From contig NW_026889757.1 in NCBI RefSeq assembly GCF_033153115.1, positions 5,084,001 to 5,148,000 on the forward strand: a stretch of 64,000 nt of DNA, given 5' to 3'. Shown here piece by piece: positions 22,303-32,702 of this stretch. Position 1 is the stretch's first letter. Each line of letters starts with the position of its first letter. The notes under the pieces were generated by a model. The model had not been told where the DNA came from and made no database searches. It saw only the letters and a list, made by a program, of their open reading frames with translations. Both the position numbers and the translations under genes were made by a program. The DNA comes from Saccostrea echinata. Its lineage: Eukaryota.

Positions 22303-22637
22303 CACAGGAGTTCGCATACCTGTCAATTTTACCGAAATTTTTTGCAAATAAAAAAAATACGTAATACCTATAATAATAACACAAGGAGTGCAACGCATTT
22401 CAGGTCACCGGGGAACCCCTCTCTTAGTATCGAGGCTGCCGCGCAATCAATTTTCAATCGAAAATAATAAAACACTAACCAATCTTTTCGGAAGGAACCA
22501 TTCTTTATGTCTGTTAATGCATGTGACTTCAAACGCCTGATTAACAGCAGCAGCAGTGACGTTTCTCCACGACTTCGCTCAAACATTCGTTGTCCGCGAC
22601 GCCATTACGTGACGTATGACTATCACAGGTTCGTAGT
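22303..22637 (+). repeat. Left terminal inverted repeat (335 bp)
   Basis: Reverse complement of 32368-32702; same length and an identical 72-aa translation in both copies. Confidence 0.96.
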
Positions 22638-22852
22638 AAATGGATGTACTTGTCAAAGATAATAAAATATTTCTATTTAGAACAAGTTTTGTTTATTTGG
22701 TTACTATATTAAATTACAAATATATATATATAGGGTTTATTGTTAAGAAATATTTTTATGTTGAGGAAACTTTAAAACCCAGGGGAAACAACTCTACCCA
22801 AAATGTCAACAGTTGAATTTGGCTCGAAATTCAAATCTTATTAAAGATAAAT

Positions 22853-25800
22853 ATGTCAACTCATTTAGACATTCTTGCTTGGTAAGTTGGGCTTTTAGAA
22901 CTAACATTTATAGCATAGAAGTTGCAATTAGATTAGTCCTAAAAATAATTTACATATTATCTTATGTACTGATACCATGTGCATTGAATATATTTTAAAA
23001 TAAAAGATTAAAACACAAGTCAATGAAAAAAATTGAAAATTACAAAATCAAAAATATTTTACTATATAAAAATATTTATGTTTACCTTTTCAAACATATC
23101 TGAATATAAGATGATGTGCAGAAGAAGTGCAGGTCCCCCCCCCCCTTTTTATTTGAAAATTATGTTAAAATAATGATGAGTAATTCTAACTGTTGAAAGT
23201 ACTGGTATCAATAAATAAAAATCACATGCTAGCATACTTTGAATTGAAAGAGAATAATGATGAAAATCAATACTAAGTAAAACTTCCTGAGGCAGGACTT
23301 CATGAATTTATCTCTACTCACTCTGGACCATAAGATTAGCCCACATATCATACATATTTAACATCCACTGAGCCTGCCTCATGCAAAGCAAATGTTCATA
23401 TGTGAAATTTAATATAATTGCAGTCTTGTAAATGAAAATATAGAGCATCAAAAGTCTGTGTTTTAAATAAAGCCCACTCTTGCTATTTATTTCACATAGA
23501 ATCTCTCACATATTCACAAAAACATGAGAACCGAATAAAAGACACCAAAATTTAGGTTAATTTTGTTTATTTCAATGATATAATGCAGCAAACATTACAT
23601 GTCAGCAGAACCTCAGAGAGTTAATGACAAGTTCCCAAAAGTGGTATGCAAGAAGGTTAAAGCAGAACCTGGGCCAAATTCTAAAAGCACAAGGAATTTC
23701 AATAACTAGTTCCATGATGAGAAGGATTAAGTATGAATACATTATAAAAACCATGCTTAGAAATTTGAATGTTATTTGCATTAGGGAATGAGAGTTAAAT
23801 TTTGCATTACAATATTTCTTTGATAAATGTGTGTGATGCACTGGTTTGTTTGATATTTCTAGTATGATTGTAAATGATGTACATTATAATCCTGTTACAT
23901 TTGCTAATCATAATCCATTTACACTGATATATATTTGTCATTGTGATTCCTTACAATATATAACTAATTTGGCCCAGGTTCTGCTTCAACCCTCTTGCGT
24001 TTCTTCGTAATCTGTCCAGATTTTCTCTCCGATAGAGCAGTTACTTTGGATCTGAGAGCCATTTTCTTTTTTCTGGGAACTTGTCGTTTGAACTCTTTAA
24101 GAGAGTCAACAAGACTTAATTTTATGAAATGTTCACTTATGTCTTGGAAGAGCTCTATGATGAGTTGTAAAACTATTTCATCCTCTATATCACTATCTGT
24201 GGGTATCTTACAAATACTTATCCACTCCTGTATCAATGAATAATTTTCATCAATCTTATTTCTCAGAAACTGATGAATGTTTTCTGTGTGAAAATTAATG
24301 TGTTCAATAGTTAGAGATGACTGTATTGCTCTATGAAGACTGATAAAAAATTTAAAGACTGGTTCACTAACTATAGTAAGCCCTCTACTTTCACCTTGTT
24401 TGGCTTTAATTTCCAACACAGTTTGGTCATTAGTATTAACATCCTCTTCCTTGATCCTCAGTTTCTGAAGAATTGCCTGTTTCTTGTAATCCAGGTTACA
24501 AAGCGCTTTCATCTTTCGACTTGTGCTTCCCAGTCTATGTAGTACGGAGTCTTGAAGCCGTCTTCTGATTTTATAAACACATCTTCCAGCAAGATACCTC
24601 ACCTTGTTCTTTGCTGCACAACTTATATCACCTTGTGTCTGTTCACCTTGTACATGTTGTAGGTTCAAAGAATCTTCTTGCTCTTCTAAAATGGCACTTG
24701 CTTTAGAAGCAAGGATTTGATCTATTATCCACAAAGTTAACTTTGAACTGAACTTGTTTTGTTCTTTTGTTACCTGTTGAACATTGAAAGTTAGTTTAGC
24801 ATAATTGATATGTTCATCACTTAACAGGAAACTGTTTATACTGTGATAAAATGCTGTAAATTCTGGGGGATTTCTCAGTCTAGATGACATATAATTTTCC
24901 ACCTTGTGCTGCAAGAAACAGGCATGTTTTCTAATAGTTTGGGAACAAAGGAATTCCAACGAAAATGATTTCAGAAATTGAGCTGATTTATTTTCATCTA
25001 AGAAGTCATTTATGTTGTATTTAAAGTCATCAGGAATGTGCTGAAATTCTTGACTATTTTCTTCCTCCTGATGAAAGTCCTCTTTGTACAATTTCTGTTC
25101 CTCGGTTTGTTGTGCAGTTTCTGATGGTATTTCGCAAAGTGCACTTGACGAACTATTACAGCACTCCAGATCATCCTCAGGAACAAGAAATGTCTCATTA
25201 TAAAAGTCAAACACTTTCTGAGGATGTTTCAGAAAAGCAGCATCCTGATTGAAATTCCTAATCCTCAGTCCGTCAATAGTTGTTGCCCTTCCAAGGGCAA
25301 CCCCTAGCTGCCCAGCACAGAAAAAAGAGTAACAATCTACTTCCACAAATTCCAGGGTTTGTCCCTGGGCCCTATGTACAGTCAGAGCAAATGCAAGACT
25401 AAGTGGATATTGTTTTCTACAAGCTAGAGTGACATTTCTATCAGGGTCAAAAATATCAAAGTTAGCTTGTTTCATAGTCACCAATTTTCCTGAAAAGTTT
25501 ACTACAGGAGGTTTGTCCTTTTCCAAGGAGTGGATAGTCCCTCTCATACCATTGTAAAGGCCAGAAGCAAGGTTTTTTAAAAGAATTACAGGTGCATCCT
25601 TCTTCAGTAACAGGTGCTTCTGCACTGGACTTTTCCTCAAGAGCTGAATATTTCCTACGATGATATACATTTATAAATATAAAGTCATAACAGATTTAAA
25701 TACTTTCAAAATTTGCCTAAGTCACAATCTCCTGCTACCTGCTAAGAAGGACTTGAATCTCACCTGCCCCTAAGATTTACATTAGGTAAAATATTTGTAT

Positions 25801-31302: not shown

Positions 31303-32301
31303 GCCCTGAAAAGATTCTCAGTCCACCAAATTAACATCCCAGTAATTAACAGTGAGACAAGGAATAATTTCAATCATATAAAGTTTTTGTGATCAAAGCC
31401 CATTAATAAGACTTGGATTTGTCAAGATTTTATGTTTTTCCTGAGTCTGCACTATATTATAAACACCTAACACTAATGTTCGGCAATTCACACTTTGTTA
31501 TTAATATCATGAATTACTGGGCGTGCTTGATTTAGCTTAATTTGGTGTACACCAGTGTACACTGGTGTGAAAGGTGGTGGTGTATAATCAAGTACATTTT
31601 ACGAGTTGTAGTGTATATGTTGTAGTATATGTTTTGCATCTCGACAGTGTGTGGCTAAAATTTTTTTGGTTTAAAGTGAAAAAAATTAAAATATATTATG
31701 AATTACTTAATTATTTAAAATGGTTAAAAAATAATTTCAATGTAATCACTTACACACAAAAGTAGATATTTACTGGTTACAAATGAACATACTTGAAAGT
31801 CGGGACTAATTTCTTGCCATATATGCACAAAAGACAACTTGAATGTGATTTCTTATCCTTTATATTACACAAAATAATTTCTTAAATTTTCAATCGTACC
31901 ATTCTCCGCCATATTGGATTCAGTGTACGCCTTTCAACACATGCCCTAAATTTGGTGTAAGAAAGTGTACAGTGAGAGTACACCCAAAGTGCACTTATTA
32001 ATTAAGAAAAGTGTACACGGTGTAAAAGTATTCTCTATTGAGAAGTTGATGGCTCGTTTTAATACTCCCCCTGTTGAGGGGGAGTATTAAAACGAGCCAT
32101 CAACTTCTCAATAGAGAATAGGTGTAAAAGGTGCAAGTAAATCAAGTTCGCCCACTGTTACATTTTTATATAAACATAGTTTATTGTAAATAAACCCATG
32201 TACCTTAGCCAATGTGTCTTTCCAGTACCACACTGGCCTGTAATTAGGAAGCTGTGGCCTTTAACGGCAAGATCTACGAGGTCTGGGGTGCCTCCATCCA
32301 T
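23964..32301 (-). CDS. PIF1-family SF1B DNA helicase with a long C-terminal extension (~819 aa); exons 32301-32204, 27788-27666, 26938-26749, 26425-26297, 26119-25891, 25654-23964
   Basis: Walker A GQCGTGKT (exon 1), TASTGVA, TLHHWAG, VLVIDEISM, GDFKQLSPV, VRRQ, LLKNL..GLYNG.RG, QYPLSLAFALTVHRAQGQTL, GQLGVALGRA; five GT-AG introns, all phase-consistent, no stops. Confidence 0.9.
32029..32120. mobile_element. 92-bp perfect-hairpin micro-MITE with a 10-bp TSD
   Basis: 44-bp arms (32029-32072 and 32077-32120), GTTG loop, GGTGTAAAAG at 32019-32028 and 32121-32130. Confidence 0.85.
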
Positions 32302-32367
32302 TCCCGCGAGAATGTCCGTTTCATAGCCGCCGCCTTTGGTTTTGTATACTAGCCACCGCTATTATTC

Positions 32368-32702
32368 ACTACGAACCTGTGATAGTCATACGTCACGTAA
32401 TGGCGTCGCGGACAACGAATGTTTGAGCGAAGTCGTGGAGAAACGTCACTGCTGCTGCTGTTAATCAGGCGTTTGAAGTCACATGCATTAACAGACATAA
32501 AGAATGGTTCCTTCCGAAAAGATTGGTTAGTGTTTTATTATTTTCGATTGAAAATTGATTGCGCGGCAGCCTCGATACTAAGAGAGGGGTTCCCCGGTGA
32601 CCTGAAATGCGTTGCACTCCTTGTGTTATTATTATAGGTATTACGTATTTTTTTTATTTGCAAAAAATTTCGGTAAAATTGACAGGTATGCGAACTCCTG
32701 TG
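32368..32702 (-). repeat. Right terminal inverted repeat (335 bp)
   Basis: Reverse complement of 22303-22637. Confidence 0.96.

Follow-up and report, generated by a model that had tools for sequence, protein, structure and literature searches.

The window analysed here is a stretch of 64,000 nucleotides from the genome of the oyster Saccostrea echinata (assembly GCF_033153115.1, contig NW_026889757.1, positions 5,084,001 to 5,148,000 of the forward strand). It contains a 10.4-kb DNA transposon of the P superfamily with two genes, one for a P-type DDE transposase and the other, on the opposite strand, for a Pif1-type helicase of superfamily 1B (SF1B). The element is probably a recent member of an old clade of two-gene P cut-and-paste transposons with representatives in several bivalves and an abalone, in which the helicase bears a tail resembling the C-terminal domain (CTD) of P transposases. 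All positions are those of the window and are collected in Table 1.

Ends and genes of the element

Inverted-repeat arms were found at 22298-22641 and 32364-32707. Base-by-base comparison of the terminal inverted repeats (TIRs) showed that the first 335 bases from the outer ends are identical, with a mismatch at base 336 and the match stopping after base 339. The element begins with CACAGGAGTTCG and finishes with CGAACTCCTGTG, giving CACAGG...CCTGTG ends, and is flanked on both sides by the same octamer, ATTTAGAG, a target-site duplication (TSD) of a length that would match by chance at one fixed position in about 1 of 65,536 cases. TIRs combined with a TSD of 7-8 bp, as in the P superfamily, are present in this element, in ten non-autonomous copies from the same genome and in the sister families L033 and L041. 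The sequence-only reading had described a P-superfamily cut-and-paste element with its own Pif1-like helicase, bounded by 335-bp mismatch-free TIRs, CA..TG ends and an 8-bp TSD, with two uninterrupted spliced open reading frames (ORFs), helicase motifs I-VI and no nested Helitron. The comparison of arms and flanks bears out this description of the ends. Both genes proved open with all introns GT..AG, and the helicase motifs are all present, motif I (GQCGTGKT) sitting on a separate 98-nt micro-exon. The classification as a P element with a helicase of its own is supported by the TIRs, the TSD and the domain evidence. As to a nested Helitron, the presence of TIRs and a TSD, the lack of a Rep domain in the ORFs and exons and a helicase core nearer to cellular Pif1 than to the Helitron protein Helraiser all agree with its exclusion.

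The transposase gene has three exons with 804 codons in total and is classed, by sequence, as encoding a P-superfamily DDE transposase. In Pfam searches, the element's exon 3 alone scored under the cut-off for both TNP-like_RNaseH_N (PF21787, 19.4 bits) and TNP-like_RNaseH_C (PF21789, 14.9 bits), and the transposases of intact relatives reached 38-48 bits for PF21787 against a cut-off of 24.6. The exon-3 family profile A1 found a single match among all PDB sequences, the Drosophila P element transposase 6p5a (E 2.3e-7, 285 positions). D303 and the NxDxxExFF motif are aligned. The alignment also covers the insertion domain of 6p5a, which splits the RNase H fold and binds GTP in Drosophila, and database records list PF21788 for several relatives. 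Searches of the PDB by phmmer with single transposase sequences gave no match.

In the structural model of exon 1 (md47c1ed30574; predicted local distance difference test score, pLDDT, 79), residues 1-90 form a predicted winged helix, for which RFX5 was the top match with Z 8.4, level with other winged helices. Residues 270-354 of the same model resemble the helix-turn-helix (HTH) of 6p5a_A, residues 128-199 (Z 7.8, root-mean-square deviation (rmsd) 2.6, 72 residues aligned, 22% identity). This Z is middling, and we place moderate confidence in a predicted HTH in front of the RNase H domain, as in the P superfamily. No Pfam match to the THAP domain was obtained in exon 1 of the element, even at E 10, nor in four intact relatives. 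From the winged helix to the HTH extends a beta-rich stretch (exon 1 residues ~170-225) with the near-invariant cysteines C173, C206, C219 and C222, possibly a zinc-binding module other than THAP. The Drosophila P transposase has about 220 residues after E531. In contrast, the oyster transposase stops ~76 residues past its catalytic E (~70-76 across 25 aligned relatives), and we therefore conclude that the CTD is absent from it. A candidate coding micro-exon of the transposase near the left TIR was dropped, exon 1 aligning from the N-terminus of an intronless relative; a non-coding 5' exon may still exist.

Motifs I, Ia, II, III, IV, V and VI as well as the 2B domain could all be read in the exons of the second gene, the product of which is classed as an SF1B helicase of the Pif1 type. 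Its exon 6 scores 25.1 bits for Pfam Pif1_2B (cut-off 23.9) and matches NCBI protein P0073 at 100%. The top PDB matches of the relatives' helicases are yeast and human Pif1. With PDB bit scores taken as a rough proxy for affinity in place of a formal helicase tree, an intact relative's core reaches 225 bits against yeast Pif1, 188 bits against human PIF1 and 58 bits against Helraiser, the lowest-scoring of 19 PDB helicase matches. The element's remaining ORFs and exons contain no Rep/HUH, Helitron_like_N or other Pfam domain.

Behind the core, the helicases of all relatives continue into an acidic linker and a conserved extension of ~350 residues, and most relatives also have a PHD finger. The finger has been lost in the sublineage of this element, where it is missing and no remnant PHD exon lies downstream of the helicase stop. 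Around the 3' end of the gene, a 33-nt inverted repeat pair (94%; 23648-23680 and 23966-23998) encloses ~350 bp, its inner arm overlapping the helicase stop codon and the ten codons before it. The pair is also present in a second copy of the element on C33, and may be a small insertion that removed the PHD-finger end seen in most relatives.

Searches were run with single exons or intronless relatives as queries, and the exon carrying Walker A was located by a pattern search, 63 bases inward of the right TIR and 4.4 kb from exon 2. This micro-exon starts with ATG. Its donor (AG/GTACAT) and the exon 2 acceptor (ttttcag/A, 27788) are in matching phase, and splicing of the two exons recreates the GQxGTGKT-to-VAVTASTG spacing of the intronless relatives L031 and L032. 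The six helicase exons, micro-exon included, total 2,460 nt, equal to 820 codons, and the frame closes. An exon running from the start codon to Walker A, with the same end residue and located beyond the transposase gene, was also found in L035 and L036 of this genome and in L046 from another organism. The splice signals, frame closure and conservation indicate that the helicase mRNA probably includes the micro-exon (32301-32204). Given that the micro-exon adjoins the right TIR, the whole transposase gene would therefore lie antisense within helicase intron 1, and we infer that in this sublineage the helicase gene begins beside the right TIR with its partner gene enclosed in the first intron.

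Two further features lie in helicase introns. A 57-nt near-palindrome (89%, 4-nt loop) is located at 32016-32133 in intron 1, between the 3' end of the transposase gene and helicase exon 1. The intron between exons 2 and 3 contains an unrelated interspersed repeat (27185-27644), for which a first look at the genome gave ~900 candidates with 68-82% identity over ~460 bp.

Two NCBI proteins of S. echinata match the element at 100%, but the NCBI models of both element genes are incomplete. The transposase model (LOC133181293, P0001) is 397 aa long, 5'-cut, begins within exon 2 and spans 29925-31299. The helicase model (LOC133181165, P0073) is 806 aa long, has Pfam PIF1 on record, starts at 28163-28104 and contains no Walker A. 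The latter model leads to a different account of this copy, in which the mRNA would start from the alternative exon and the helicase would be inactive or regulatory, a Walker-A-less helicase-CTD protein competing with or replacing the full-length form. In its favour, the Gnomon model joins the alternative exon to the same acceptor in the same phase, and there is a precedent, as Drosophila P elements produce a truncated repressor through alternative splicing (see PMC7776569). However, the donor of the alternative exon (GTAGTC) is weak and the exon shows no detectable conservation, whereas the Walker-A micro-exon, ending at the same point, recurs in L035, L036 and L046 (the last from another organism) and gives a closed frame when the exons are summed. 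We consider a regulatory or inactive helicase to be highly improbable.

Table 1. Features of the two-gene P element, with positions in the 64,000-nt window
Feature	Position	Strand	Basis or remark
Whole P-type element, 10.4 kb, Saccostrea echinata	22303-32702		TIR and TSD anatomy
Left TSD, ATTTAGAG	22295-22302	no strand	direct reading; same as right copy
Right TSD, ATTTAGAG	32703-32710	no strand	same as left copy
Left TIR, begins CACAGGAGTTCG	22303-22641	+	base-by-base comparison of arms
Right TIR	32364-32702	-	base-by-base comparison of arms
Transposase exon 1: predicted winged-helix N-terminus, beta-rich Cys region, P-like HTH, first catalytic D (LLIDEMSIQ)	28456-29625	+	
Transposase exon 2	29877-30040	+	
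Transposase exon 3: second D (DYMMADGATTN), putative insertion domain, catalytic E (NSDLIENFF), short basic tail, stop	30225-31302	+	
Helicase exon 1: start codon and Walker A (MDGG...GQCGTGKTHWL, then split R codon)	32204-32301	-	
Helicase intron 1, 4,415 nt	27789-32203	-	holds entire transposase gene on opposite strand (predicted)
Helicase exon 2: motif Ia VAVTASTGVAS	27666-27788	-	acceptor ttttcag/A
Helicase exon 3: motif II VIDEISMV	26749-26938	-	Pfam PIF1 33 bits
Helicase exon 4: motif III GDFKQLSPV	26297-26425	-	
Helicase exon 5: motif IV region	25891-26119	-	
Helicase exon 6: 2B domain, motifs V-VI, acidic linker, helical C-terminal extension, basic tail, stop	23964-25654	-	
Helical domain resembling P transposase CTD	24039-24656	-	part of helicase exon 6
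Alternative first exon of NCBI model LOC133181165	28104-28163	-	P0073 mapping; protein without Walker A

Paired genes across loci and organisms

In the assembly searched for relatives (923 Mb), about 30 loci have a P-type transposase, 26-58% identical to that of the element, within a few kilobases of a helicase of the same type. The intact intronless pairs encode transposases of 804-808 aa and helicases of 1,107 aa. Metagenome and genome collections yielded 84 foreign contigs with a related transposase, 25 of which also contain the helicase, most of the remaining contigs being too short to tell. The helicase is encoded on the strand opposite to the transposase in all 37 loci with both genes and in each of the 25 foreign contigs. 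In the sister families L033, L041, L034 and L061 (whole contig), both genes are enclosed by TIRs of 220-320 bp. L033 and L041 have CACRGG ends, and a TSD could be read in these two (8 bp and 7 bp, respectively). Furthermore, transposase and helicase trees, confined to 18 loci, have 11 of 15 splits in common, compared with three or fewer in any of 5,000 label shuffles.

The arrangement of the pair varies among the loci. In L031, L032, L034, L061 and L075 the genes are convergent and non-nested. In L033 and L041 they are nested, with the helicase split after ~290 residues, and in this element, L035, L036 and L046 they are nested with the split after the Walker-A micro-exon. Helicase matches flank the transposase on both sides in L040, L059 and L060. 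Many bivalves have named homologues, with Mizuhopecten, Mytilus, Pinctada and Dreissena among the genera, and so has the abalone Haliotis, in which the transposase and helicase homologues (Haliotis rufescens LOC124136148 and LOC125383642) are each recorded on an 8.98-Mb contig. The corals Porites and Pocillopora have more distant transposase homologues. The intact relative L031 (G000:C81:2010501-2020500), with an 808-aa transposase and a 1,107-aa helicase that includes a PHD finger, is tandemly repeated on C81 with a period of ~7.47 kb. The contigs L043-L046 ( JBEVXV010000032.1, JBEVXV010000465.1, JBEVXV010001042.1 and JBEVXT010000051.1), filed as 'MAG: Sedimenticola sp.' (MAG, metagenome-assembled genome), contain intron-containing P-type transposase and Pif1 helicase genes that are 50-57% identical to those of the oyster element. 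Their DNA is almost certainly that of an animal host, misplaced into the genome bin of a symbiont.

Very likely, then, the helicase is an integral component of a two-gene P lineage. The competing view would be a single accident, in which P TIRs came to enclose part of a Helitron or the PIF1 gene of the host, or a P element inserted into a helicase gene. It could appeal to the single full-length copy in the assembly and to the host-like look of a helicase gene with five introns, one of which contains an unrelated repeat. Such an accident is contradicted by the dozens of diverged loci and foreign contigs that carry the same pair, by the congruence of the gene trees and by the enclosure of both genes within TIRs in several families, and segmental duplication of one locus is excluded by the 26-58% identity. 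At the locus itself, helicase exon 1 lies within the right TIR boundary and the truncated copy on C33 retains a TIR together with the helicase 3' end. No Rep/HUH domain was found in the ORFs or exons, and Helraiser comes last among the 19 PDB helicase matches. A one-off capture is thus largely refuted, and we give it hardly any credence. The notion of a young lineage in the sequence-only reading was not borne out, the design being common to elements of this genome whose transposases are 26-58% identical and to contigs from other organisms, with congruent trees. The lineage is old, and this copy alone is young.

The assembly contains one full-length copy of this particular family. Of the second, truncated copy on C33, which is 97% identical, there remain the left TIR with the subterminal region and the 3' end of the helicase gene. 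Candidate copies of the TIR number at least 275 across the genome. All ten 2.1-kb non-autonomous elements examined have TIRs of 313-314 bp, 91-94% identical to those of this element, and the same 12-bp termini, with ten different TSDs of 7 or 8 bp. The ~2.1-kb relatives, with their at least 275 TIR matches, constitute a sizeable repeat family of this oyster genome. As to the ratio of nonsynonymous to synonymous substitution rates, close copies are limited to one 480-bp fragment that contains a stop codon, the other relatives being too diverged. The copy in the window is young, recently inserted and apparently autonomous.

The helicase tail and the transpososome

The AlphaFold (AF2) model of the helicase extension (m7d4ddfb5c409, pLDDT 87) is all-helical. 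When it was compared with 48,161 chains using VIA-align, the top match was 6p5a_B residues 617-734, the CTD of the Drosophila P transposase (Z 10.9, rmsd 2.8 Å), with 118 of the 118 CTD residues aligned, to residues 133-320 of the tail model. The second-best match had a Z of 7.2. The oyster domain ends in a basic helix and a basic tail, like the Drosophila CTD, and its conserved motifs include GK.RYI.G.C..K and GLT...D..F.FF. A profile of the tail domain retrieved 1,208 protein clusters from a library of 1.84 billion proteins, and all ten clusters sampled among the 150 strongest matches were Pif1 proteins. A scan of the genome with PF12596 gave no match and is uninformative, the control genomes likewise being without match, and the ESM Atlas returned no usable match. 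The predicted structure, taken with its context, makes true homology between the helicase tail and the P transposase CTD quite likely.

In Drosophila, a disordered linker connects the RNase H domain to the all-helical CTD, which touches the looped-out single-stranded transposon end and directs a basic helix and a basic tail at the target DNA (PMC7776569). The structural match between tail and CTD provides a concrete basis for the idea that the helicase works at the single-stranded ends of the transposon. In the mechanism that we propose, the first gene would supply a P-type DDE transposase with a winged helix for THAP, an HTH and an RNase H domain with its insertion domain, without a CTD, and the second an SF1B Pif1-type helicase with the CTD-like helical domain behind its core, followed by the basic tail. 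The CTD-like domain would dock the helicase into the transpososome. In the Drosophila structure the CTD runs beside the single-stranded stretch of the transposon end and extends to the target DNA. At that place the ATP-driven 5'-3' motor of the helicase could separate the strands between the staggered cuts of P transposases. Alternatively, the motor might open the long TIRs or take the strand-transfer complex apart.

That the helicase works inside the transpososome, as the predicted fold suggests, seems to us about evenly balanced. The more far-reaching proposal is a split P transposase, in which the CTD would have moved to a Pif1 helicase, the ATP motor would be an obligate subunit of a eukaryotic cut-and-paste transpososome and both proteins would be needed. 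We advance this tentatively, our expectation lying slightly on the doubtful side of even. If the proposal is true, the helicase performs mechanical work at the transposon ends (strand separation at staggered cuts, TIR opening or disassembly), and the nested antisense layout would couple expression of both halves.

A number of observations weigh against the reading of the element as a two-gene P transposon with a CTD-bearing helicase. The CTD match comes from a predicted structure, and helical domains can score a middling Z by chance. Sequence profiles of the tail domain failed to retrieve the Drosophila P transposase from the PDB, and Foldseek of the tail model against the PDB gave no match at E 0.001 or better. 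The gene trees cover 18 loci, with canonical P and THAP9 outside them, the NCBI helicase model takes another first exon, without Walker A, and the presence of one full-length copy of the family in the assembly calls for caution about its current activity.

Some of this would also suit a helicase that is an integral, co-evolving passenger acting apart from the transposase, its CTD likeness being due to chance. Cellular Pif1 promotes break-induced replication, and the gain of P-element copies depends on templated gap repair. The passenger might restore a copy by promoting repair, homologous or break-induced, at the donor site left empty, or help in replicating the long, foldback-prone TIRs. Indeed, pairing and co-divergence demonstrate retention of the gene, not its place of action, and neither the sequence profiles nor Foldseek link the tail to the P CTD. 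Yet a chance likeness would have to explain why the best of 48,161 chains, with 118 residues aligned and a lead of 3.7 Z, is exactly the domain missing from the neighbouring transposase, why the transposases of the clade all stop ~70-76 residues after the catalytic E, and why the tail ends basic, as the Drosophila CTD does. On balance, a helicase that acts apart from the transposase appears unlikely, without being negligible.

Comparison with known mobile elements

Textbooks present P elements as a model of cut-and-paste transposition, whereas little is understood of THAP9, their human relative. The way in which P transposases generate and deal with their unusual 17-nt single-stranded ends still lacks a settled mechanism (PMC7776569). 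A natural lineage with two components would make the role of the CTD and strand separation testable by omitting or mutating one partner. Pif1 joins the short list of helicases recruited by DDE transposons, together with RecQ in KolobokH and the AcademH helicase, and Pif1-like genes in animal genomes are unsafe as a marker of Helitrons. The element also exposes problems of annotation, both NCBI gene models being truncated and such elements contaminating bacterial MAGs.

Helitrons and Helentrons resemble the oyster element in that a Pif1-family helicase is encoded by a eukaryotic DNA transposon. They encode Rep-Hel proteins and have neither TIRs nor a TSD, whereas the oyster element has both and no HUH/Rep domain. 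Membership in this group was rejected, since no Rep or Helitron_like_N was found in the ORFs or exons and TIRs and a TSD are present. With the cellular PIF1 proteins (yeast Pif1 and Rrm3, human PIF1), the oyster helicase shares the SF1B motifs and the 2B domain. The oyster-type helicases differ from them in being multi-copy, TIR-bounded and located beside a P-type transposase, and in adding a C-terminal helical domain, with or without a PHD finger.

Kolobok elements duplicate TTAA. KolobokH, with a RecQ helicase, and AcademH are DDD/E cut-and-paste transposons with an accessory helicase, which in Kolobok-1_CCri is encoded on the complementary strand (PMC9587614, PMC10045372). The RecQ-class helicase of KolobokH has been reported in fungi only (PMC9587614), and AcademH elements have 9-10-bp TSDs (PMC10045372). 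The likeness to the oyster element consists of an accessory helicase on a DDE cut-and-paste transposon. The transposase superfamilies and TSDs, in contrast, are different, the helicase is of the RecQ class in KolobokH versus SF1B Pif1 here, and no transposase domain has been reported on the helicases of KolobokH or AcademH, unlike the CTD-like tail of the oyster helicase. Assignment of the element to either group was rejected, the oyster transposase matching P-type models and structures only and the TSD being 7-8 bp. KolobokH and AcademH are analogues, not relatives.

The combination of a P element and a Pif1 helicase had been put forward in the sequence-only reading as possibly unreported. 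Full-text literature searches agree with this, having turned up neither a P-superfamily element that encodes a Pif1 helicase nor a transposase domain that had moved onto a helicase; the family may nonetheless be catalogued already in Repbase or Dfam, which these searches did not cover.

Within the P superfamily, long TIRs are known from Galileo transposons (PMC3688188). The P element and THAP9 share with the oyster element a DDE RNase H transposase, for which a P-type insertion domain is predicted in the oyster element, a P-like HTH, TIRs and 7-8-bp TSDs. The transposase of this clade differs in having a predicted winged helix instead of THAP and no CTD. In the P superfamily the CTD belongs to the transposase polypeptide and a single protein suffices, and here the CTD-like fold is found on the helicase. 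The clade adds a conserved Pif1 helicase gene with this CTD-like domain, antisense to the transposase gene and, in this element, nested with it. What is new here is the union of a CTD-less, THAP-less winged-helix transposase with a helicase tail that resembles the P CTD.

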